Below the pieces are notes generated by a model. It was not told the DNA's origin, searched no databases, and saw nothing but the letters and a program-made list of their open reading frames with translations. The position numbers and the translations under genes were made by a program. A stretch of DNA of 63,994 nucleotides, the filler included, from Choristocarpus tenellus KU-1152 (lineage: Eukaryota > Protista > Phaeophyceae): assembly GCA_964200185.2 (NCBI GenBank). It is 12 parts of 12 records of this genome, joined end to end, with 100 filler letters (N's around TTAATTAATTAA, not from the genome) between each part and the next. Parts side by side here need not be neighbours in the genome. Positions count along the whole stretch, not along the records: positions 38,099 to 43,493 come from CAXNAD020010930.1; 11 more parts are not named here. One strand, 5' to 3'. Positions 1 to 43,493 of this stretch are shown piece by piece (the stretch's first letter is position 1; each line of letters begins with the position of its first letter).

Positions 1-934
1 CTCCTTCGTGTTCTGTGGTGAGTGTGCAACATGATTTTGACCCTGTACCTGTTCGTGTACATAAACAGTAGAACATACCAGCTGGTCATGAAATCATCGA
101 ACGTTGCACCACTGATACTAGTCCGTCATTGGATACTGTCGTAGTAGTGGAGCCAGTCATACACTCCATGCCTGCTGTAGATCAAACCACTGAACCTACA
201 CATCCTTGGAACCGTATCGTAGCTGCTCGCACTCTCAGTATTTGGTCAACCAATAATAGATCAGTATTGGTTCAAATGGCAAATCCAACTACACGGAAAG
301 TGCGTATCAGGAAGCGTCTTGTGATAGGTCACTTAACCCCTATTTCAGATCAGGTACCGATTACTGTTAGTACTATAAATACTGATTCTTCTCCATTCAG
401 TAAAGTTAGAGAGTAATTACATCAAGCCTTCACTAAGTCAAACTCATTTAAAGATACCACGTTCAGTCAGTCACAAATGTCTCAACTTTTAGACCTCTGT
501 GCTTGTTATAGATCGGTATTTTTGTTGAATGCAGCAGAACCAGGCTGATGTACCCTAGCTGAAGCAAAATTCCTATAGAGCCTGGTATCAAACCTGTTGA
601 CAGGAACCCTTACAGAACAACCCCCGTGCTCAACAAGTAATTGACTCGTGTGTTAATACTATGGAAGAGCAAGGCATTATTGGAAAACGTGCCAGCCCTT
701 GGGGTAGTCCTGTTACTATTGTGGTCAAATCTGATGGCTCCCCACGATTCTGTGTAGACTATAGGTCAACTATTAACAAACACTTTGTTCGACAGTCTTG
801 GCCTATGCCTGATATAGAGTCTCATATTGATACTGTTGGGGGTGCCAAATTTATCCCCGTTTGTGATATTCAGAGTGCATATCGGCAGATTCCTGTTGCT
901 GAGGATGACATTGATAAAACTGCTTTTGTCACTG
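1..934 (+). pseudogene. Degenerate Ty3/Gypsy LTR-retrotransposon pol fragment (protease-RT linker and N-terminal RT)
   Basis: 661-934 reads MEEQGIIGKRASPWGSPVTIVVKSDGSPRFCVDYR...DIQSAYRQIPVAEDDIDKTAFVT, which are the classic Gypsy RT motifs. Upstream, PVDRNPYR and LLDLC.YRSVF are broken by stops (e.g. 414-416) and frameshifts. The RT ends abruptly after KTAFVT. Confidence 0.92.
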
Positions 935-990
935 TGATTTAGTTGCATGTGTCGGATTTGAAATGTCAGCGAAAAGAAGAAGACTGTTGC
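934..990. mobile_element. Internal fragment of MITE family A at the point where the Gypsy RT is truncated
   Basis: gtgatttagttgcatgtgtcggatttgaaatgtcagcgaaaagaag matches the interior of the full copy at 23637-23814 (gatttggtcgcatgtgtcggatttgaaatgtcaacaaaaa). Confidence 0.7.
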
Positions 991-2112
991 TTGGGTTCAT
1001 TTCTGTCCTTGCGTACGCAAGAGGAACGGGAATATAGGCCACCATTTAAATGGGTTTGGTTTTGAGTTTGGATGTTTGAATGTGTCGGATTTGGAGTCTG
1101 CTCAAACAGGTTTATTGGTTTATATGTATGTTGGTCGCGTGGTTACAATGGAGAAGAAGAGATACGTGTTAGGCTGTTCCAGGGCTGGATTTTGTTGTTG
1201 TTGTTGTTATTGTTGTTGTTGTTGTATGACTGGGATTTGGTTAGCACACAAAGAGGGTTGTGGGTTAGGGTATGTTTTCCCACTGTTGGATGAGGAATTG
1301 AAAAAAATAATATGGGCAGTTGGGAGGGGTTTTTTTTCGTTTAGTTGCTTACGTGAGTCATATCCAAACCGACACAAAGAGGACTGTCAATTTGGGCCTG
1401 TTCTCCCGGCGTGTGCACGTGTTGCTGATGATGTTAGGGTTGAAGGTGTTGGTGGGAAGTACGGGAAAAGATGTGTACAGAATGTGGATGTGTATACGAG
1501 TGGTTATTGGTCAAGGTCTATTGCCGTACTTTTCTCTGAAAGTAGTTCAAGGTACAATTCCAGAGGTCCCGGGTTGGTGCTGTGCTGAGGAGCATCGTGT
1601 GTGAACTTGGGTATATAATCCTCCAAGATTCGAAGGAGAACGAGATCGAATCTGTAATGTCGACACTAGGACAAAGCGAGAGGTGGTACATAGAGTATTG
1701 AGAAGAAGGGTGGAGGTGCGTTATGGTGTACAAGGAATAAATAGCGGCTCACAGAATGGACAGGGTATTCATCGCATCCCCTGGCGATTTGTTTTGAAAG
1801 GTTAGCTGAGCAGATGGAGAAGAATTGTTTGATTGATGTATTATATTTTAGTTGTCTAAAATGTGTAGCGGACACGCTTTTTTAAACAAAAAATAACACA
1901 CAGGTCTAATCCTCAACGTGAGTATGATGTATATGATACACACAGACTCTGACTGGTATCAATGTACATCGAAACCACTATCCAAATGTATGACTCGTCG
2001 AATGGAAAGTGTGTGAACATGGTAGTCTGACACCAAGGCAATACTAATGTATAAATCACCATGACCTGCTACTCTACCCGTACTTAAACCAAAAAACGAA
2101 ACGACTTAAGCC

Positions 2113-3275
2113 CTATTTCAATTGGTGGGCGGACTCGAAATTGCATTCGTCCCCCTTTTCCCACCACTCCGTGAGCTTAGGGTATGCCTCGACAAGACGG
2201 TGCCATAGATTTAGACGTGTGGAGTACCTGGCATTCCAAGGTTTGGGCTTCACGAGGCTCAAGAAGATAGCCTTCCTCGCCTGGAGTGCTTCCACATATT
2301 CGGGACGCAATGTGTTGCCTGACTTCCCTCCAAGATCGTGGAGATTAACCTATGTGGGCTCGTGGACGTAGCATTTATCCCTGAAAACAAAACAAGCGGC
2401 CCCTTTGCCGGCCTTGATGAGCCTGAACCCATGGTCATATATGACTTGGGTGATGATTTGAGTCTGCACTCGATACAGTAAAGAAGCAGGTTTCGTCGTT
2501 GATCGTAGGAGCTCGGTAACGCACGGCTCCATGAAGGCTTCGGTGATCCCCACTTCGGATCTATTACCAGAGTCGGTTGCATCCTGTGTGACGCATCCGC
2601 CATCACAACGAGATGATCTTGCGTCGTCATCATTGTACCTCGATGTAGATGAACACGAATTTACCGTGTACCCGCCCATTTTGGCAGAAGCAAAGATGTC
2701 GTCGAAGAGGCCAGGGTCTAAAGCGCTGCCATCAGGACCGCGAGGCTGTTTGAATGGTTTCATCCGTCCAGCATCTTCTCTCGCCCTATTCTTCCTAAAT
2801 AGCGTCCTTTTCCCCTTTCCTTTGCCCTTCTCGGAAGCCTTGTCCCTTGGGGTTGGGGTAGGATCAGCATCGACGCGGTTCTCCTTCCGCCTCACACTAT
2901 GGTGGGGGGTGTACCCTCCCCCTTGTGACTCATGGCCGCCGCTGCGCATCGAATACACGTTCAGGGACATACATGTGTCACTCTTCACAGGCATGGACTG
3001 TGAGTCCTTGTCTAGCCACCCCCTCCCATCCTCCTGTACAAGTCACGCTGGATCTGACAAAGAGTCACAATCATATCGGTCCACATCATCATCAGAGTCT
3101 TCTCTCACTCTCTTCTTCCAAATTAGCGTCCTTTTACCCCTTCCTTTGCCCTTCTCGGAAGGCTTGTTCCTTGGGGTTGGGGTAGGATGAGCATCAACGC
3201 GGTTCTCCTTCCACCTCACACTATGGTAGGGGGTGTTCCTCCCCTCTTGTGACTCGTGGCCGCCGCTGCGCATCA

Positions 3276-3326
<51 letters not shown>

Positions 3327-4292
3327 CGGGGACATACATGTGTCACTCTTCACAGGTGTGGAGACTCTGAATCCTTGTCTAGCCGCCCCCTCCCATCCTC
3401 TTGTACAAGTTCCTCTGGACCTAACAAAGTGTCACAATCATATCGGTCCACATCGTCTTCAGAGTCTTCTCTCACCCTCTTCTTCCTAATTAGCGTCCTT
3501 TTCCCCTTTCCTTTGTCCTTATCGGAAGGCTTGTCCCTGGGGCTTGGGGTAGGGTCAGCATCGACACGGTTCTTCTTCTGCCTCACACTATGGTGGGGGG
3601 TGTACCCTCCTTCTTGTGACTCATGGCCGCCGCTGCGGATCGAATACACGCGTTCGGCGACATACATGTGTCACTCTTCACAAGCGTGGACTGTGAGTCC
3701 TTGTCTAGCCGCCCCCTCCCATCCTCCTGTACAAGTCCCTCTGGACCTGACAAAGTGTCACAATCATATCGGTCCACATTGTCTTCAGAGTCTTCTCTTA
3801 CCCTCCTCTTCCTAAGTAGCATCCTTTCCCCCTTTCCTTTGCCCTTATCGGAAGGCTTGTCCCTCGGGGTTGGGGTAGGGTCAGCATCGACACGGTTCTC
3901 CTTCCGCCTCACACTATGGTGGGGGGTGTACCCTCCTTCTTGCGACTCATGGCCGCCGTTGCGCATCGAATGAGTGTTTCGTTACATACATGTGTCACTC
4001 CTCAAAGGCGTGGATTCTGAGTCCTTGTCTAGCCGCCCCCTCCCATTCTCCCGTACAAGTCCCTCTGGACCTGACAAAGAGTCACAATCATATCGATCCA
4101 CATCGTCTTTAGAGTCTTCTCTCACCCTCTTCTTCCTAAATAGCGTCCTTTTACCCCTTCCTTTGCCCTTCTCGGAAGGCTTGTTCCTTGGGGTTGGGAT
4201 AGGATCAGCATCGACGCGGTTCTCACTCCGCCTCACACTATGGTGGGGGGTGTTCCTCCCCTCTTGTGACTCGTGGCCGCCGCTGCGCATCA

Positions 4293-8009: not shown

Positions 8010-10353
8010 TTATTATGTGACTTCTATCAGGTGAGTTGTTGCCAGTAGGTATTGGTCACGAAAACCTTTCACAACTACAAATAAGGTACTACCACACGAA
8101 CATAAAACATAAGAGTGACGGTCGCACACAAAAGAGTAGATATAACTATGTACCATTAATTTTGTACTTGGTATACAGTATATTATGAGCTCTACTTGTA
8201 TACAGGCTCTATTTAGCTCTATCCTCAGGCACTCCTGGCTTAACACCTCGCGCACTCAAAGCACATGCATTCTACTCAGTTCTTTCCACTACTTGCCATG
8301 GATACTGTTGGAGGTCTATTGATAGGGATTCGTGAAACCCAAAACCCGCTGGTATGGGCAGTAATAGTGAGCAATTGGGTAATTCCTGCGAGGAAATGCT
8401 GACCAAGGAGGAGACCCAAGCCCACTGGACAATCTATTTGGCTCACCACTTCAATAACCGTGTTATGTAGTTCGAAGTAGTACTTAAAGAATACTGTATT
8501 TGGTATCTATATTGAGTAGTGATACACACACAATATATATATATATATATATATATCCTCATCCCTTGCAAGAAAGAACACAACCAAGTCAGGGGTCCAT
8601 CAGATACTACTTGCAAGAAGAGTTGTGGCGCATTTGAAGACAAGAAATCAAGAGAGCTAATACTGGTGGATGGAAGATGCAGCCATCATATTCAGAATAT
8701 CAAGTATATTTCATGTTGAAGATAGATCAAAGTACCCCAATGCATAAAATATATTTCAGAGTTACTCCCACCCAATATTACTACATGGTGTGAAATATAA
8801 AAAAGTTTGAGGTGAGGGCATCTAATGCTATTTTCATTGATAAAGCACTAACAATTCATCACGCTCAACTATCTGCCTGCGTGTTGTTGCAACACAGGAA
8901 AAACCAATCCAAACTTTAAATGTTCACAACTTCGGAAACTGTACAAAAACAACTATCAACGTTTTTATTTGACGTCTGTAATACACATCAAATAAGTGTC
9001 TGGATAATGACGTTCTAGAAGAAATAAGAATGACGAGCGTTATCATGTACATCGGAAGTTCTAGACCAAATTAACACCAGAGTCTCCAGAAATAACAAAT
9101 GTTACAAACCAAATGGAGTCGACTCTTTGTTCATTTAGAAGTATGACTGAGTACAATAATAGAGATATATTTGGTGTTCACCAACGAAATAGTTTATGGA
9201 AGGCCTCTCCATTTTGACCCGTACTAGGGTTGTGCTTGATGGATTCTCTTTTTGTCGTCCTGTTAGAGGAAAGGTTTTTTAAGCGTGTACACATCCTTAC
9301 ACTTCAAACAAGAATAAATCAGAGATCAAATTGTTATGGTTGGTAGTACATTTCTTAGCGAGTTTACAAAATCATCACGGTTGTTCTGAATTGTGATGAT
9401 GGAGCACTACTGATAAACGACTCCTATTACTACGTAGAATCGACATTTGTCTTGTTGATAGTGCACCTTTTGTGGCGCACGTGTAAGTTGGAGATTGCAC
9501 TTGCTCTGTTGGAACACTATAGTGTATTGACAGAGTCGTAGTCTAACAGATGATTTCGAAGTCATCTCCAAGACAGGTGGTGACGAGGAACGATAGACAA
9601 AACTATAATTCAAGGACTAACATGCTTATCATTTTATTATGGCTGCAATAATACCTTCTGATGAAAAACAAGACATGGTTGGACCATACCCCCCACATAC
9701 TACTTACCATGTCTTGTCGTTCGTGAGAAATACTGTCACCTTTGGGTCGCCCTACATCTCTTTTCCTCAAGCTTGGACACGTTCAGATTCAAAGAGTTGA
9801 GATATTGTTTTTCACTAAAATGATACTTGAAACTATAGCAGTATACCACGCCATCAATACCTACAAAGTAGTAATCGATTTGCAAGCACTGTATAGGCTA
9901 AGGCGTAGCAAAACGTCAGAAATATATCTCCCTACAACTTTACAAAAAAATACGCCCACGAAGGCAACAACAAAATACATGCGAAAAAAATATTGGTCAG
10001 CAGATGATAAACAACGCATTCGTTCTCAGATCCTGACATGTCCATCCATACACCTGCCTTTCCCCCTCACCTAATCATATATATATAAACACCCCAAAAA
10101 ACGTTACCACAAGCCTCGTTGTCCTTAGAGCAGGATGAGGGGTGAACACTCTCACACAAGGCCGATAGTACTACTAGAAATTTTCAAACATAAATATACA
10201 AGACACGAAAAAATCCAACCTCAGCAGCCCATACAACCCCAGACAACCTCCCTNNNNNNNNNNNNNNNNNNNNNNNNNNNNNNNNNNNNNNNNNNNNTTA
10301 ATTAATTAANNNNNNNNNNNNNNNNNNNNNNNNNNNNNNNNNNNNNNNNNNNN

Positions 10354-10658
10354 CCATTTCCGGCACTCAACGAGGAAATGTGATAGTAAAGGCTCTAACA
10401 CCTCGAATCCTGTGCCCGTGTATGAACGATGGGAAAGACTGTCAAACAGCGCTCGAGATGGTAGCAGGATATGCGATGTTGAGGTCGGAAACTGTGAGTA
10501 AATGGGAGAGAGACTTCCTAACTAAGGGCCATATCAAGGTGTCGGAGCAAGGGCGCGATGAGAGGCGTTTCGTTCTAGGCCTCGACGAGGACATCCTTGC
10601 CGAGGTCAAAGAGTGGGTGCACAGGAAGAAAGGGTCAGGAGGCTTTTTTCTTCTCTAA
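10354..10658 (+). mobile_element. Possible DNA-transposase N-terminal (HTH-like) fragment
   Basis: ETVSKWERDFLTKGHIKVSEQGR...LDEDILAEVKEWV resembles, from memory, the N-terminal region of IS630/Tc1-like eukaryotic transposases. No DDE core is visible. Confidence 0.35.
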
Positions 10659-10978
10659 ACCCTATACTTTAATCAAGTAATAGTATATCTGTTGCCACTC
10701 TTGATGACCTTCAATCCTTGGTTCGAACCCTAATATGACCAGTCTTTCTTCAAAAAAAGAAAAAAATGGAGAAAACAACGAAGCCCGTACTCTGGAGGGC
10801 ATTGTGACGGGCATCACGAATATGCTTTTAGTTCTTAAATCCGATGTCTAAATCAAACGTTATGACCGGACAACCCCAGAGGGCGAACCTTCTGCCACCA
10901 CTATATGGAGAAATAGATGTCAAGGTATACCTTCTAAAATAATGGCCCTTTAAAGGTATACCAAAGTTAGGAGTTGGT

Positions 10979-11186
10979 TATATTATCATTATGCCCTTGA
11001 CATTTTGCAGATGTGTCGGGGGAAAACAAATGAAAACTATACATATGTCAGTATAAGCCCTAAAGAAATGAAATAGGAGTTGGTTATCACAGACACTAGG
11101 GGTAGTAGTAGTCGTACAGATTGAAACAATGCTTTTTTGGTTTCTTCCTGACACATCTGAAAATATCAGAGATGATGATAATATAT
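10979..11186. repeat. Imperfect foldback with ~57-bp arms; one arm recurs at 53466-53535
   Basis: The left arm (tatattatcattatgcccttgacattttgcagatgtgtcgggggaaaacaaatg) is the imperfect reverse complement of 11131-11186. It is a close reverse complement of 53466-53535. Confidence 0.7.
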
Positions 11187-11661
11187 ATAGAAAACTAATA
11201 CAAGAATGAACAACATTATGTTCTACTTCAATGATTAAATCATCAGAAATTTAGTTACTATTTTTCATACAGTACTTCAATTTCTGCTTCATCTCACTAA
11301 TAAATCTACAATAAAAAACAAAAAATAATATATTGTAGAAAAAGTGGTAAGAGTTGAGAGTAAACGTGATATATCCAAGGACCTTCCCACAACTTACAAG
11401 GTCATCTTTGCTGGTTGTTAGTCGATTGGGAATCGCAGAGCGAGACAAATAGGGAGGCCTAAGACACACCAATCTTCTCAACCCATAGGATTGCGCGTTT
11501 TGTACCGCTGGTTAGGCTTAAGGGCGCCAAACCTCCCATTCATTTGGAGGCAGATTCGTTTCCTCTATCTTCAACAATCGAAACATCACAAACTGAACGC
11601 ACGACCTCAAGGTTGACCGCCCATCGCCTACGCAAAAGGGACGTAGATCACTAAGAAAAAC

Positions 11662-14600
11662 ATGTGGAGCCTACTCAGGAAAGATCTTGGGGAGTTCGTG
11701 AATACCATCAAAGATGACACTGCTGGGACCATTAAGTCCGCCATTGCCATGGCTGAGGAAGTCAAGGTGCGACCAGTTCACTACCCTCTGCATCTCTATT
11801 TTTTGCTCTTATTGATATTTGATCTCACCCCTCTAGCAACCTCTCGATCTCTCTCGAATGAAAATTTTGTTTTAGGTGGTTGAACCTTGTACCCCTTCCA
11901 GAATTAGAGGTATTATTTTGTTCTCAGCGTGTGAAGGGTCGATTTCGGTAAGAACACATACTCGTATGACACCACAGACTCACTTGCCCACCCCAATCTA
12001 TGCTCCCCTTAAAAATTAGTTCTCACCATTGGAGGGTTGGGGTGAAGAACAGGAAGGGTGTGGTGAACGACGGGTGGAAAGCGCCGGGTCAACACCTTCA
12101 GGGAAGCCTAGTGCGGCCCTGCTTGCGTTGAGAGCGGATGTGAAGACTTACACCGAGGTTTGGATGTCTGTAACAGCGGTTCTACTACCACACGCTCAAT
12201 ATATATCCTCGGGCTGTAGAAATTGGGTCAGAGAGGAGGAGTGCATTAACTGTCTTGCGATGAACCTTCCGAGGTTGTACTATGCAAATTCACCTGGCTG
12301 AGATTATCAGAAGAGAGGAAGATGCTTGAAAGACGTCAGATCAAAGGAAATATTTGTTCATGTACAGAGAGCATGTACGTCTGCAGGCCGTTTTTTTGTG
12401 TATGTGGGTAATGCAACGATGCACCCCCACTCCACCTCCCATCGTATTTGGACCTTGCACTACTTGGAAGAACACAGCATGGAGAAAGGTGCAGTTTGGT
12501 GGGGTTGCAGTCTCAACTACTACCTCACACTCTCTCCTTTCTTCCTATTATAAAACTTATACTTTGAAAAGCATCACAAGGAAGGAATATGTAAGTTGCA
12601 CCAAGACAGGCGCATTCAAATCGGTAGGGAGCTCAAACCACAACATTAAAATCTCCGCAAATGTTTGATGTAATGGAACGCTTTAAAACCTTTTCCGGGG
12701 GGGAGAGGAAGGACTTCCAGTCGTTTGACATTAGATATAGAGCATACGGTAAAGGGGACTATCCGTAACCTACCTCGTATCTCTTCCATGTAAACTTGTT
12801 GATTTTGTTTGACCAGGATATCCCTGATGGGGAGGAGGGAGAACACCGTCTTTTCCTACAGGATTTCGATCTCAGGGCAAAGACCAGTGAAATATCTTCC
12901 CTATTGCAAGGAGATGCTGTCATCACACGAATACATACGGAGCTGGTGGGTATTTCTGATGAGGTTGAGTAATGCCACAGGAAACAATAAGAGGTAGAGG
13001 AGCAAGGGATTTTTGGCGCAAGGGATTGACATAGGTTCAGGCTGGTTTGTCACACATCTATGGCTGTGTCAATTGCCCCAGTTGATCGGGGTGCAGGCAA
13101 CATTTCATCTTTTGTGTGTTAGGTCATGTCTTGATAAATCCGATGTTTTCTTGTGCAGAGTAATCTTGGATCTTTTCAAACTGTGGTTTGTGTGCTGCAT
13201 CCCCATAACTCCAGGGCGTTTCTTCGTTTTCTGGTGTGCATCGATGTGCAGTGTACCTTTTTGGGTCAAAATTTGACTGTACCTTGCTGCACTGTTTTGT
13301 TGTGTGGCATGTGCTTTTGGAGGTTCAGTCAAAACGAAACCTTGCACTACTTCCCTAAAAGTTCTCGTCTACACATCTTCCCTCCCCACATCTCGTTTCC
13401 TCGGCCTACACCGCGGCCCATCTTGTTCCACAGTCCTGTCCTCCTATGTTCCTTCTCCTGATCATGGCTGAAAGTCTTTGCCACGGAATCCCCCCTGCCC
13501 TAGTTACATGCATGCTGGTGGTGTCCACAATATCTGCAACTATGATGTTTATACTGATAACTTGTCTCCTGCCTTGCCAGGTTCCAGAAAAGGTTTCCTA
13601 TGATGCGTTCTGGACGAGGTACTTTTACCGAGCTGCACGACTAGACAAACCCCGTGCCCCTGCCATGTCCTTCCCAGATGAGGGTGATCAGTCATGCCAT
13701 AAATAAAGCTTTCCTTCTTTTAGTGCCTCTTGTCTGCATGTGTGTGAAGTATAATACTATACCCAACCTCTGTGAGCCCACTTTGCCCTGAAAGAGCATG
13801 TTCCCAGAGGTGGAGCATGCCTTTTTATTTTCAACTTGTGACCAGTTCCTAGCACCGAAGTTAGTTTTATCAAGCTTCCTTTTGGTTGAAATTGATCCAG
13901 ATAAATTCAAGTATTGTATTTTATTGCCCAGTCTCCCAACCCAAGCTCACCACCATGTCTACCCCCACCTCTTTAAAACCTCTGTCCTTAGCACACTACT
14001 ATAATGTGGAAGCACTATATGAAGTTTTTTGTCCTATTTGCCTGTGGTAAGTCTTGCTAGTTGTGCCATGCATAAGTGGAGATCCCAATGTCAATTTTGA
14101 CCCCAAATCCCATTACGTTTTGTCGGATCTCTCAGAGGAGGACGATGACTTTGGCTGGGGCGAGGATGAGCATGATGAAGGGGTTGATCCCTCAAGAGCG
14201 GTTGGGGGAGGGGGGGGTAAGGGATGTGAACGACGTTCAGAAGAAAAAGGCGTTGGTGGCAGTCACTTCGAAGGGAGAGAGGGTGTTGTGGGGATTACAA
14301 TGGAAAGACAGGCTATTTCGAATGAAGCAGCAGGGGAGGTGACAAATGGGGATAACACAGGGGTGGCAACATTTGCAAAGGCTGATGCAACATGCGTGCA
14401 GCTACGCGCTGCTCTGAGGGTGTCTGAGCTGAGCAGGGAGGCCACTGAGACTGAGTTAAAGCAATTGCAGGAAGAATTGAGGCTTCAAGCTGAGTTGAAG
14501 GCGCCTCAGGCTGGCGAGAGTGAGGGATCAGGTGGACATTGCGGAAGGGAAGAGAGGGCCTCTAAGGTCAGTGGTAGAGCAGGGTTGCTAAATGCCATGC

Positions 14601-37998: not shown

Positions 37999-40364
37999 NN
38001 NNNNNNNNNNNNNNNNNNNNNNNNNNNNNNNNNNNNNNNNNNTTAATTAATTAANNNNNNNNNNNNNNNNNNNNNNNNNNNNNNNNNNNNNNNNNNNNAT
38101 ACTCGCTCTATTCGCCTGGAACACCACTAGGGTTCAGGAATGGTTCCAAGTTGAAGAGTCAGAAGGTGTGGTTGAGGCCTTGACCCAGGACCTCAAGGAT
38201 GAGCTAGTGTAGCTATTACAAACACTGCAATTAAGGCTTACGTGTTTGAATAGTTTGTAGACCAGAGCATCACACAGGATGACAGTCTAAAATGGATCTC
38301 ATACTAAGTCACCCGCCATATTATGGAGAGCTCGCTTTAACACAAATTTGATGTTCATGTGTGACACGCTTCAAAGTATAAAGTTTGGTAAGTTATGATG
38401 TAAAAAATATTATAAACTCGAGTCTAACATACATAGGTAAAACTTGGTTTTCTACTCAGGAATGACATTGCGTCCACGCAACACTTTGTTCGCAGAACAG
38501 AACCACATTGTACAAGACTCATCAAACAACTTCTGTCTGCATCGAATGTCTCACAGGAAAACCACTCAAGTACTATATTTATCCCTCTCGTAGCAATGTG
38601 CAGGATCGATCTAATCTGCTCTCTTTCGCCTTTATTTCTTAAGAAAAAATGGTGCCTATTCAAAAAAAGGAATGGAGGAAGACTCACCCGTCCACTGCCA
38701 TCGTCATCATCACCATCATGAAACGTTCTACCCTTCATATGGGTACCAATTGTCTTATCATCTCCAACTTTATAACATACAATATTAGAAAAATAGAGGA
38801 CAGAATAATAAAAATATTTGAAAAATGTTTGAGGGATAATAATAAAAATAATATATATATATATTAGAACCTCCGTACTAGGAACTATGTGAGTTATATT
38901 GTTTGGGGTCATTTGTGACGGTCTCTTGTTTTTGCATGTTGGATATTCTCTATTATTATACTATTGTTGTATTGAGTATCCCATCTTCACAACTCTCAAG
39001 AATTCGCAGAAAAATTATCCCGAAATGTTCCTCAACCACATCTATAATTTTTCTCGAAGAATCTCATTGCAATGTATTTTCCTGCCTTTGGGGGTCTAGA
39101 ATAGAGGATCATGCACGACTCTTCGAATATAGTTTGGTTGTGTGGGAAAGCTGTGAAGATAGAGTGTTCTTGCGTATCAGGTGTAGTTTAGTGAAAAGCA
39201 AATCTAACGGAGACCGGAGGAATTCAACGCGATTGCTTGGAATTGAGACTGATTGGGAGGAAGGGTGAGATTTCTCCTATTTCCGCCCCATGTTACGGCA
39301 TGAGTAAATCGGCGAATGCAACGATGCTTCCACGAAGACGACTGAATGGTGAGAGACAGGATTTTTAGTCAAGCTAAAAGCTTTGTGTGAACTATGTATG
39401 CTGCGTTGTTTAATCAAGTTTATGAAATGTGAACCTTCCTCGTCACGTCTCTAGCATATACCACCTGTTGACTTTGTTTGAGGAGAGCGTTGTTGGCCTC
39501 GCATACTATGGTCATCCGATGTTGTCAAGCGTATTGTCAACATAGCCGTGATGTCCCGTTGTATACAACGGTGTAGAATCTCGATTCAAAGTCTTTGATA
39601 ATCTCGAAAATTATGATCTCGATTGAGATGCATTTAACTCCTTAGTTTTTTTCTGGTATCTAAGTCTGAAATGTTACGAGCTGGTTGTTCTACGTAGCTT
39701 GAAGAGATAGGGAAGACTATCACCTGCTAAGCCCATAGATAGGAATTACACTTTGTAGTTTATTTCTGCGATGATGAGAGAAAAAAGGATTTCGCTGTGC
39801 TGCTTCTGGAAGCAAAGTATGCCACATGTATATATCGAAATAAGCATAAGATATTTGCTGTGATGTTTCGCTGTGTGAGGCAAGGACGGGCGCTAAACAA
39901 ATTAGTGTTTGGGAGAAATTGATGTTTCTTTAGAATATCTCGTAATATACCCTCCACTCCTTAGACGACGGGGGCGAGAGGGCATTAATCGTTTCATTTC
40001 CAACTGCATTACACCCAGGCAACGTTGCACTCTTGATCACCAAATCATGCTTGCTACATACTTGAAGTAGTACGTCCTTCTCTTGCACCTCCACCTCATG
40101 CTTTTTGCTCCTTCTGACGTGCTTTCTCGCGTAACCTGTTAGATCGACTCGTGTAGTTCCGCCAAACCCTCTTCGGATCGCCTGGACATAGTGTTGCCAA
40201 TTTAGGATTCCGAGTTTCCTTCCCCGTCACCATGCTGAGTGTATATCTTAATTTATTTATCCCACGACCCCATCTGCATTTCCCGCCATCACCCAGCTGG
40301 GCCTCATGGACAGTCAGCCCCAAGCTTGAGCGCCAAACGTACTATCTGTTGGAGAAAGGGAGAG

Positions 40365-43203
40365 ATGGGAGTGGTCTGGGCTATTACAGCAACACTTGCA
40401 ACCATTTCTTGTGCTACTGCATCGCCAAATGAGTTGTGGTATTGGCAGGTTGGTACTGAGGCGACCGAGTGGATTTTTGCAACTGCCTTGGACTCTGCAG
40501 GGGATCTATTTGTTGGAGGTTACACAGAAGGTATTTTCAATGTGACCACCTCCGTACATGATGATGATGGTGTTGTGGATGAAGATTTTGTTGCCGTCAA
40601 GATCAATGGAACTACTGGAGAGACTCTTTGGCAGTGGCAAGATGGCACGATTGAAGCAGATATCGGTCAGGCTGCCGCTGTGGATTCTACAGGAAACTTC
40701 TTTCTTGCAGGAGACACCTACGATGATTGGGACGGGATCAATGCCGGAAAAATGGACTTTGCTGCTGTCAAACTTAACGGTCAGACTGGGAAGGAGATTT
40801 GGCGCTGGCAAGACGGCACCCTCTGGTATGATAGCATTTGGGGTGCTGGAATAGATCCAGAAGATGACCTGCTGTTAGGCGGTCACTCTTCATCATCGTT
40901 CAGTGGCACAAGCAAGGGGGATTTCGACTTCGTGTCAATCAAACTGAATGGAGAGACGGGGCTGGAGATGTGGAGATGGCAGAATGGTACTGAAGATGAG
41001 GACTGGATTAATGATGCTGCTGTAGACCAAGAAGGAAACATTTTCTTGACAGGATATACCTACGGTAGTTTAGGTGGTGTAAACAATGTTGGAAAATCCG
41101 ACTTTGTAGCCATGAAGCTTGACGGAGCATTAGGTATTGAACTATGGAACTGGCAGGCAGGGACAGTGTGGGAGGATAATATATTAAGTTGTGCTATAGA
41201 TCCTTATGGTGATGTCATCCTGGGTGGGCACACAACAGGAGTGTATAGCACCCTGCATGCTGGCGACCTCTACGACCTGGTGGCTATAAAGATTAATGGG
41301 GTGATGGGGAACGAAATCTGGCGCTGGCAACATGGTACTCTCACCATTGATTCAGTATTCACTGTTGATGTGGATCCTGCAGGGAATGTGTTACTTGGGG
41401 GGGATACATTTGGCGATTTTGGTGGCTCAAATGTTGGTTCTTACGATTTCTTGGCTGTGAAGCTAGATGGGAAGACAGGAGAGGAGATAGGAAGGTGGCA
41501 GGGAGGTACCCCGATGAACGATACGATACGTGCTGGTGTTGTTAACTCTGCAGGAGACTATCTCATGTCGGGTTACACAGAAGGAAGTTACGGAGGTAAA
41601 AATTCTGGATCCTGGGACATAATGGCAGTTAAGCTAGAGACTTCACGTCTTGGGTTAGATCCCACCCCTGCTCCCGTCATCATCACCACAGCTCCTGGAG
41701 CTGCCACTCCTAGTGAGGGTTTGGTTGTCACCTCTAGCCCCAGGACAGAGCCTGCATGGCCAACTACCATGCCTGCACAGACCTTGGGAAGCAAAGGTAG
41801 CAGCAGTTTTGAGTTGGATGCGGTAACGAAAGGTGTGGTGGTAGCAGCATGCCTGGCGTTTCTGTGCACTCTGGTTGGCTGGATAATGTGGCAGCGGGAT
41901 CGAAACAGGAGTCATGAGAGCAATAAGATAGAGGGCAACACAAGTGAGGAGACTGTGAGTAGTCCCAAAACGAAAGGGAATGGTACACTGCAACAGGGGA
42001 ATATGGATTCAGAAGAGGGCCAATGGACAAGCACAAATCCAGCCACAAATCCTCGAACACCAAACGCAGTTGCAGTGAGCGAGGATATTTATAGGCTTGA
42101 CGACAATCCTATAGTGAAGGATGTTGTAAACCCTATGGTGGTGACTGTTCAAGATCGGCAAGCTACTGCAGCTATGGTGGTGGAAGAAGGTAGAAGGGAT
42201 ACTGAGAGGACCCGCATGCAGATTGTCAGATTGGCCTCTAATGGACCTGGGATTGCTCTCTCTGCTCCACAATGCACTCCATTACCACATCAAAAGTTGC
42301 GTCCTTCATCTCTGAAGAGTAAAACTTCAGGCAGTGCAAGACCAAATCCTCCATGTCCGAAGGGCATACTTAAGAGCGACTCAAGCACTGGGTTACCCCC
42401 ACTGTCCAGGAGTGTCACAGACCCTGACAAGTTTGATTCCCAGTATGATTCAAAGTTTGACGAACATACCAGCAGCAAGGAAAGGCCTAAATCCCTTCGA
42501 AACACCCCCTTTGAAACAGCGGGAGCAGTGGCGGCAGCAGCAGTCACTGTCGCTGCGCATTCCAATATTCCTGGGGTTGCTGAGGCTGCTACTCTTGTGT
42601 CTGTGTTGGTGGGACTGGTGAGTGACTATCGTGGCAATGAGGAAAGCACCCAAGACACATATCGCTGGTGCAGATCAATTGTGGGCATGCTAGACTGTGC
42701 ACAAGGTTTCTTAGCGAAGGTGAGTGGAAACTGTTTGGGCTTCCCAGCCCTTGCACTCTTCTACGATCTCATTACAGCACAATGATAGTACGTGTGCCAT
42801 TTTACATTTTGATTTTTTTGCGTGTGCCTCATATTTAGTTTATTTCATTGCTCTAGGATGGCATTTATTGTATATTTCTGCTTGTCTTTGTGCATTAATG
42901 TATCAGTTGAGTCAACAATGTTTTAATCTCAGTTTCATATACTTCACCAGGAGAAAACCTCTATTGCTTAGTTCTTTGAAGAGATTTGTCACTTGAATTT
43001 TTGAAGTCCCCTTCAATATTATTATTTGATGTTTTAGCATGCCCTTGGAAAGAGATGACCGTCGAACAGCTGAAACTGATTTTGTGCAACCAAACTAATA
43101 GAAAAGTTTAATTCTTGATGCTGCTTTCTTCCTGCAGAACGATTGCCCGCACGCTCTGGCGCTTCTGGATGATGTACGTTTCTCCATAGCATCGTTGGTG
43201 TCG
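40365..43203 (+). CDS. Single-pass receptor-like protein: signal peptide, 7 SBBP-like beta-propeller repeats, P/T stalk, TM helix, cytoplasmic tail ending in an MLKL-N/STAND-N-like helical domain; 3' partial
   Basis: Exon 1 is 40365-42719 (ATG of MGVVWAITATLATISCATA to donor AAG|GTGAGT). Exon 2 is 43138-43203 (cctgcag|...|GTAAGT), encoding NDCPHALALLDDVRFSIASLVS. There are seven ~57-aa repeats E.WrWQ.GT...D.....avD..G...l.G.T.g.......G..Df.avKl.G.tG. TM helix GVVVAACLAFLCTLVGWIMW at ~41832-41891. Confidence 0.9.
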
Positions 43204-43443
43204 GTAAGTTAGACCTTTTCAATGCCCTACTCTGTCATCAAGTATGTATTTCACATCTGTGGCATTTATTGATTTGTTGCTACAAGTATTCTTTTCGATC
43301 TGTTTCAAGGGTCACTGCATGATGGATCAGATCAACACACACACACACAAAATATATTGTCATTTTGATAGTTGTTGCAAAACCCTGCTGAATCTGGAGC
43401 ATTTTTCTCTTTTTCTTAGGAAAGGGTCACATCTTTCTGTTGT

Positions 43444-43493
43444 CTGGATCAAAGTATCTCGGGGGGGGGGTCGGCGTCCGTTTTTCACCCTTT
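43444..43493. mobile_element. MITE family A left end (intronic), cut by the contig end
   Basis: ggatcaaagtatctcggggggggggtcggcgtccgtttttcaccc matches the left end of 23637-23814. Confidence 0.82.

Follow-up and report, generated by a model that had tools for sequence, protein, structure and literature searches.

Within a 63,994-nucleotide stretch of DNA from the brown alga Choristocarpus tenellus KU-1152 (the window; 12 parts of assembly GCA_964200185.2 joined end to end), contig CAXNAD020010930.1 (positions 38,099 to 43,493) carries a gene at 40365-43203 on the (+) strand that encodes a candidate surface receptor: a beta-propeller ectodomain, a single transmembrane (TM) helix, a cytoplasmic linker, and then helices that resemble the N-terminal four-helix bundle of MLKL. 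Judged from its sequence, this is a genuine fragment of a gene, and it most likely belongs to a published family of brown-algal receptor kinases. The architecture through helix 3 is directly established in the window and the full architecture in relatives; the fold is predicted. Modelling and comparison lead us, with moderate confidence, to read the intracellular half as an MLKL-like unit (an additional helix, H0, then the four-helix bundle, a brace and a TKL kinase) on a flexible linker, in which the bundle would act as a switch and not as a pore. For the receptor as a whole, a putative role in defence or surveillance is the one that we favour.

The helical domain is divided between two exons. 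A single long exon (40365-42719, +), a stop-free open reading frame (ORF) of 785 codons, ends with the first helices, which in the sequence-only reading of this DNA had also begun at 42510. H0 and an IPG turn occupy 42510-42575, ahead of the MLKL-equivalent bundle, as placed by a structural model of the homologous domain described below (H0 = residues 2-20) and by the conserved P and G of the turn. The helices equivalent to MLKL alpha1 and alpha2 follow at 42576-42719, as located by alignment, model and superposition. Intron 1 (42720-43137, 418 nt, phase 0, at a site common to the family) has its donor, AAG/GTGAGT, at 42719/42720 and a polypyrimidine-CAG acceptor at 43137/43138. It leads into exon 2 (43138-43203, 22 codons or 66 nt, phase 0), which encodes the greater part of the MLKL alpha3-equivalent helix, gives a profile match where expected and closes on a second donor, TCG/GTAAGT. 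The best relative, P0001, is also from C. tenellus and has an identical architecture, with 45% identity over the propeller (E 9e-93), 64% over the exon-1 part of the helices and 62% over exon 2 (P0001 residues 625-645); its gene, locus L001, has introns at both places found in the window gene and an exon 2 that is likewise 66 nt. Because of the GT-AG sites and this matching exon, a genuine splice from 42719 to 43138 is supported by the sequence, as had been proposed when the helices were first joined to an exon that the ORF track missed. The ORF read-through end at 42785 was rejected as the true C-terminus since the intron position is conserved. In 123 of the 140 relatives described below, a Val (GT codon) stands directly after the shared intron site, i.e. 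the reading frame enters the intron. An exon at an AG near 43420 was also rejected, as the profile does not match there and the sequence continues into a high-copy repeat. Intron 2 begins at 43204 with the donor GTAAGT and extends to the contig end at 43493; a family profile run over the contig piece gave no match beyond exon 2, and exon 3, with the remainder of the bundle, presumably lies past the contig end together with the brace and kinase of this gene.

Between the window gene and P0001, the linker could not be aligned (local score 28) whereas the 70-aa helical part scored 221. The helical segment is thus conserved while the linker is not, and it is therefore a real conserved domain. In a wider alignment (A2) the cytosolic Cys of an RWCRS motif within the alpha1-alpha2 segment is invariant (48/48) and P, A and L positions are near-invariant, all of them retained in the window copy, and the P and G of the IPG turn are conserved in 47 and 43 of the 48 sequences.

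To identify the helices, the window exons were searched one by one, and the P0001 domain was used as the complete domain for folding and feature searches. Pfam MLKL_N (PF22215; curated cut-off 27 bits) was the commonest match among 17 aligned domains (6/17, best E 2.1e-5), followed by Rx_N and GIT1_C with three each, every one of them scoring under its curated cut-off. By features from the language model ESM, the P0001 domain lies near fungal clusters that include MLKL_N at 0.92 (176-191 shared), with MCAfunc clusters at 0.86-0.88; the window half-domain shows the same MLKL_N lead, at 0.89. AlphaFold (AF2) predicted a confident bundle for the P0001 domain (predicted local distance difference test 87.5; predicted template modelling score, pTM, 0.83). 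Residues 22-137 of this model superpose on residues 0-121 of human MLKL (6zz1; Z 10.0, root-mean-square deviation 2.8, 112 residues), and it also matches MLKL structures 6d74, 6zvo, 2msv and 4btf, with Z ranging from 8.5 to 10 for MLKL. MLKL residue 1 falls on model residue 22-23, so H0 is an additional helix ahead of the bundle. The model superposes as well on Rx-CC, MLA13-CC, NRG1 CC-R, Cbl TKB and Sw-5b SD (Z 8-10.2), and, taken together, its five helices look like CAMP factor and designed repeats (Z 11-13). An Atlas shape search gave weak rows only, among them a SesA NACHT-N cluster at a TM-score of 0.54.

The relatives supply what the contig end cuts off. With the 74-aa helical piece of exon 1 as query, an exhaustive search found 140 clusters (at 50% identity) that carry the helical segment, mostly single-exon fragments, with named members from Ectocarpus, Scytosiphon, Ascophyllum, Pylaiella and Cladosiphon. 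In a word search the helical region by itself had returned no matches, a null made meaningless by the 140 clusters found later. Viral and metagenome contigs were scanned as well and yielded no locus. A TM helix with a basic patch precedes the helical domain in 79 of the 140 and a propeller blade in 29, and the linker varies from 19 to 350 aa (median 180). Complete relatives run in the order ectodomain (propeller, LRR or other), TM helix, linker, helical domain and TKL kinase (usually non-RD), the ectodomains of full-length members being LRR, PMP-repeat or unclassified. Two earlier suggestions, that ectodomains are swapped and that a kinase may follow past the contig end, are both borne out by these relatives. 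Brace-like helices and then the TKL kinase follow the bundle, the order seen in MLKL. The kinase of full-length relatives matches Pfam PK_Tyr_Ser-Thr (E about 1e-56), with intact motifs and, in brown-algal relatives, a non-RD loop, HGDLKS; among the 12 relatives listed, the window gene's own kinase being off-contig, the catalytic loop is HGD in 10, HAD in one and HRD in one (P0157). Followed exon by exon, locus L005 has seven propeller blades, the helical bundle and kinase exons, in order and on one strand. Short matches with the domain near the called start are no evidence for soluble versions: P0054, the one tested, has an in-frame propeller blade upstream.

Several observations weigh against the reading of an MLKL-like receptor kinase. 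Every MLKL_N match is sub-threshold (the best tabulated at 23.4 bits against the cut-off of 27); neither the window piece nor P0001 matches MLKL_N, and hidden Markov models of the alignment found no MLKL among PDB sequences. Z values of 8-10 are ordinary for helical bundles and unspecific for homology. The packing of bundle against kinase is of low confidence in a second model (pTM 0.55), and the link from a non-RD kinase to defence is a correlation only, drawn from plants. The P0001 contig, at 6.5 kb, also ends without a kinase, like the window gene, whose kinase is off-contig. The window 74-aa piece had no matches in Pfam or PDB sequences, and structure searches with the bundle-plus-kinase model matched kinases only. 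The sub-threshold Pfam scores, the lack of sequence matches to solved structures, the lack of a significant Foldseek match in PDB and BFVD (E above 0.09) and the best structural matches to unrelated bundles would also fit a lineage-specific five-helix juxtakinase domain that came to look like MLKL by convergence. We regard this as improbable, as sequence profile, language-model features and structure all point to one family, the helices covered by Pfam profile positions 19-126 are those superposed on MLKL 1-121, and the bundle is followed by a brace-like helix and TKL kinase, as in MLKL. Because three methods agree on family and register, and brace-like helices and a kinase follow, the helical domain is very probably homologous to the MLKL-N/Cbl-N/CC group of four-helix bundles. 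The class first proposed for these helices has held, on the sub-threshold Pfam matches, the ESM features and the predicted fold in register with MLKL. The domain is nonetheless MLKL-like, not an MLKL, because its scores fall short of Pfam membership and its N-terminus is not free: it sits after a TM helix, a linker and H0, whereas the N-terminus of MLKL is free in the cytosol.

A kinase-less propeller-TM-bundle protein, serving as decoy, co-receptor or adaptor, would fit the annotation of P0001, its nearest homologue, without a kinase, and Phaeoexplorer tables give nine Ec32 QAD proteins outside the receptor kinases. That the window copy is such a protein nevertheless appears decidedly improbable. 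In P0001 exon 3 stops at RLQ/GT, precisely where relatives run on as LGLQV into brace and kinase, and the last annotated exon (L001 5225-5301) matches nothing and looks spurious; for these two reasons the public gene model, on a contig of just 6.5 kb, is probably truncated. In Ascophyllum L006, which runs from blade to bundle to kinase, the kinase exon lies ~4.8 kb beyond the bundle, and the bundle genes with enough sequence to judge (L002-L006, P0066 and its kin) have a kinase. We infer one for the window gene as well.

Under the switch model that we favour, the propeller would bind an extracellular ligand, possibly from the cell wall or a microbe, receptors would cluster upon binding, and the non-RD kinases would trans-phosphorylate. 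Bundle and brace would keep the resting kinase switched off and, after activation, would drive oligomerisation or partner docking, with no pore. We prefer oligomerisation or docking to a pore because the N-terminus of the bundle is tethered. The sequence-only reading had placed the bundle in a class of membrane-disrupting effectors; such an activity is not supported here, where the N-terminus is not free and where the same fold occurs in the non-lytic Cbl TKB and Sw-5b N-terminal domain. In a receptor-coupled executioner or channel, ligand binding and phosphorylation would free the bundle (H0 and/or the alpha1 equivalent) on its long tether or by proteolysis, and it would oligomerise and insert into the plasma membrane, causing Ca2+ influx or hypersensitive-like death without separate helper proteins. 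Consistent with this are the similarity in fold to the executioner domain of MLKL and to Rx-CC, MLA13-CC and NRG1 CC-R, a CAMP-factor match that takes in the five helices (Z 12.5), MCAfunc clusters among the ESM neighbours, a long tether and the hydrophobicity of H0 and H1 (mean Eisenberg 0.47 and 0.51; Kyte-Doolittle (KD) 1.79). Moreover, the wheat kinase-fused MLKL R3AK kills via alpha1 (10.64898/2026.08.07.743466), and brown algae, for which no immune receptors are known, respond to Eurychasma with hypersensitive-like death (PMC12396294). Designed helical repeats match CAMP factor's score, however, so that these Z values are unspecific, and we rejected the CAMP-factor match as evidence for pore function. 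Cbl TKB (Z 9) and Sw-5b SD (Z 10.2) have this fold but are not lytic, the net charge of the domain is near zero or negative and thus gives it no overall basic character, the bundle lacks a free N-terminus, and the domain is retained in all receptor subtypes seen, consistent with a core signalling part. An executioner or channel is therefore unlikely in our estimation. We are similarly doubtful that brown-algal receptor kinases arose when an entire MLKL-like kinase became tethered to ectodomains that can be exchanged, with the bundle still acting as a membrane-permeabilising or Ca2+-conducting effector. If true, that reading would describe a one-protein sensor, kinase and executioner at the cell surface, the missing trigger of brown-algal hypersensitive-like death.

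Upstream of the helices, the features of the long exon place the domain on the cytoplasmic side. The start codon and a predicted signal peptide are at 40365-40424, where aa 1-19 are hydrophobic (KD peak 1.56, by hydropathy only) and the N-terminus of P0001 is hydrophobic at the matching place. The ectodomain (40437-41640) is an intronless, seven-bladed beta-propeller of SBBP/'QAD' type, as indicated by seven W-x-WQ-x-G repeats (starting at 40437, 40629, 40800, 40971, 41145, 41319 and 41490), a match to Pfam SBBP (PF06739, E 1.1e-9) and identity to P0001. A Pro/Thr/Ser-rich stalk (41641-41831) leads to the TM helix and basic residues (41832-41894), which give a type I topology; the helix is aa 490-508 (41832-41888, KD 2.39), with RDRNR directly after. 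The 204-aa cytoplasmic linker (41898-42509) is of low complexity (74% S/T/P/Q/N/D/E/K/R/G) and unconserved. The topology first read from this sequence, from signal peptide to cytoplasmic helices, is upheld.

Propeller genes in the family differ in their introns. The propeller is intronless in both the window gene and P0001, and both have an extra intron after exon 2 that L005 and L006 lack. Other brown-algal propeller receptor genes (L005 5882-10150, L007 5-2694, L008 914-3085) have one exon-sized segment per blade, reminiscent of the Ectocarpus ROCO and NB-ARC genes, in which one repeat per exon underlies exon shuffling (PMC3341825). Two further receptor-bundle-kinase genes, L004 1648-4278 (P0187/P0084 cluster) and L002 240-2954 (P0087), are intronless, on short metagenome contigs of 37% and 43% GC respectively. 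L004 has a GIY-YIG/zinc-knuckle gene as its neighbour, and the kinases of both cluster with brown-algal kinases. These genes may have been captured by giant viruses, or they may be retrocopies or transcripts; nothing turned up when viral contigs were scanned. L003, an intron-poor eukaryotic sequence of 55% GC, holds two divergent bundle-kinase genes, at 349-3720(-) and 10001-12736(+), whose kinases are of HRD type and which are preceded by PMP/NosD-like repeats, and from it the bundle-kinase layout may extend beyond brown algae. On the window contig itself, which makes up a complete 5,402-nt contig of run X1, a high-copy repeat lies at the 3' end (43440-43493) and at 38099-38123 (summed depth >30,000 in X1). 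Because contig joints connect the 3' repeat with the 5' end, this repeat probably caused the assembly break. Depth is also raised at 38813-38870, an AT-rich stretch that contains a (TA)n microsatellite, and a (CA)n run lies inside intron 2 at 43330-43350.

Brown-algal receptor kinases evolved independently of plants and animals, and brown algae undergo pathogen-triggered cell death without a known receptor or executioner. An MLKL-like bundle inside these receptors offers a concrete hypothesis of origin, the capture of a bundle-brace-kinase unit, and makes the receptors candidates whose part in seaweed immune signalling or cell death can be tested. Being small, the bundle lends itself to direct tests of oligomerisation, channel or killing activity, and even a non-lytic outcome would leave a receptor-kinase layout not found described in the searchable literature.

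The surface-receptor arrangement had been thought uncharacterised, but the propeller receptor belongs to the published 'QAD' receptor kinases of brown algae. Denoeud et al. (10.1101/2024.02.19.579948) describe LRR receptor kinases, a type reported earlier, together with newly found beta-propeller ones, with domains given as 'SP, LRR, TM, kinase' or 'QAD, TM, kinase' in the accessible part of that work. The receptor class is known because the N-terminal residues of P0066 (E. siliculosus CBN73941), which matches our helical piece (E 1.3e-7, 46% identity), are those of Ec-28_003330 in their Table S10. The window gene shares with this class a signal peptide, an SBBP/QAD propeller, a TM helix, a common intron position and the helical segment; it differs in that the Choristocarpus propellers are intronless where others have one exon per blade. 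In the accessible text and supplements of that study MLKL is not named and no bundle is among the domains listed for these kinases, and the literature that we searched, mostly without subscription papers, held no description of an MLKL-like domain in an algal receptor. The combination of an MLKL-like bundle with the kinase inside this known class is thus apparently unreported, though automatic annotation (CDD MLKL_NTD, IPR036537) may already flag the bundle.

Among systems outside the algae, animal MLKL and the plant MLKL or kinase-fusion proteins (AtMLKL1-3, wheat Pm13, R3AK) share the four-helix bundle, brace-like helices and TKL-type kinase seen in the relatives. MLKL is cytosolic, whereas the brown-algal protein is a membrane-anchored receptor with an internal bundle and an additional helix ahead of it, and animal MLKL is a pseudokinase whereas the brown-algal kinase looks catalytically intact from its sequence. 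In AtMLKL the bundle and brace form an auto-repressed tetramer, with immunity separable from death (10.1101/681015), and the death switch by a free alpha1 is believed to be ruled out where there is an N-terminal extension (PMC6944444). The bundle topology is also that of fungal HeLo-like/Goodbye-like STAND N-terminal domains, plant CC/RPW8, MCAfunc, PUB N-terminal and Cbl 4H domains (the IPR036537 group), and the ESM clusters nearest to the P0001 domain comprise Basidiomycota and Mucoromycota proteins, MLKL_N and MCAfunc; the brown-algal domain differs in that it comes without an NTPase or U-box and stands between a TM linker and a kinase. Plant non-RD receptor kinases (FLS2, EFR, XA21) are likewise single-pass proteins with exchangeable ectodomains, have a non-RD kinase as do most of the relatives listed, and are of independent evolutionary origin. 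Plant receptors are not known to carry an MLKL-like bundle in the juxtamembrane region. The plant non-RD receptor kinases that have been characterised recognise microbial signatures (PMC3411088).
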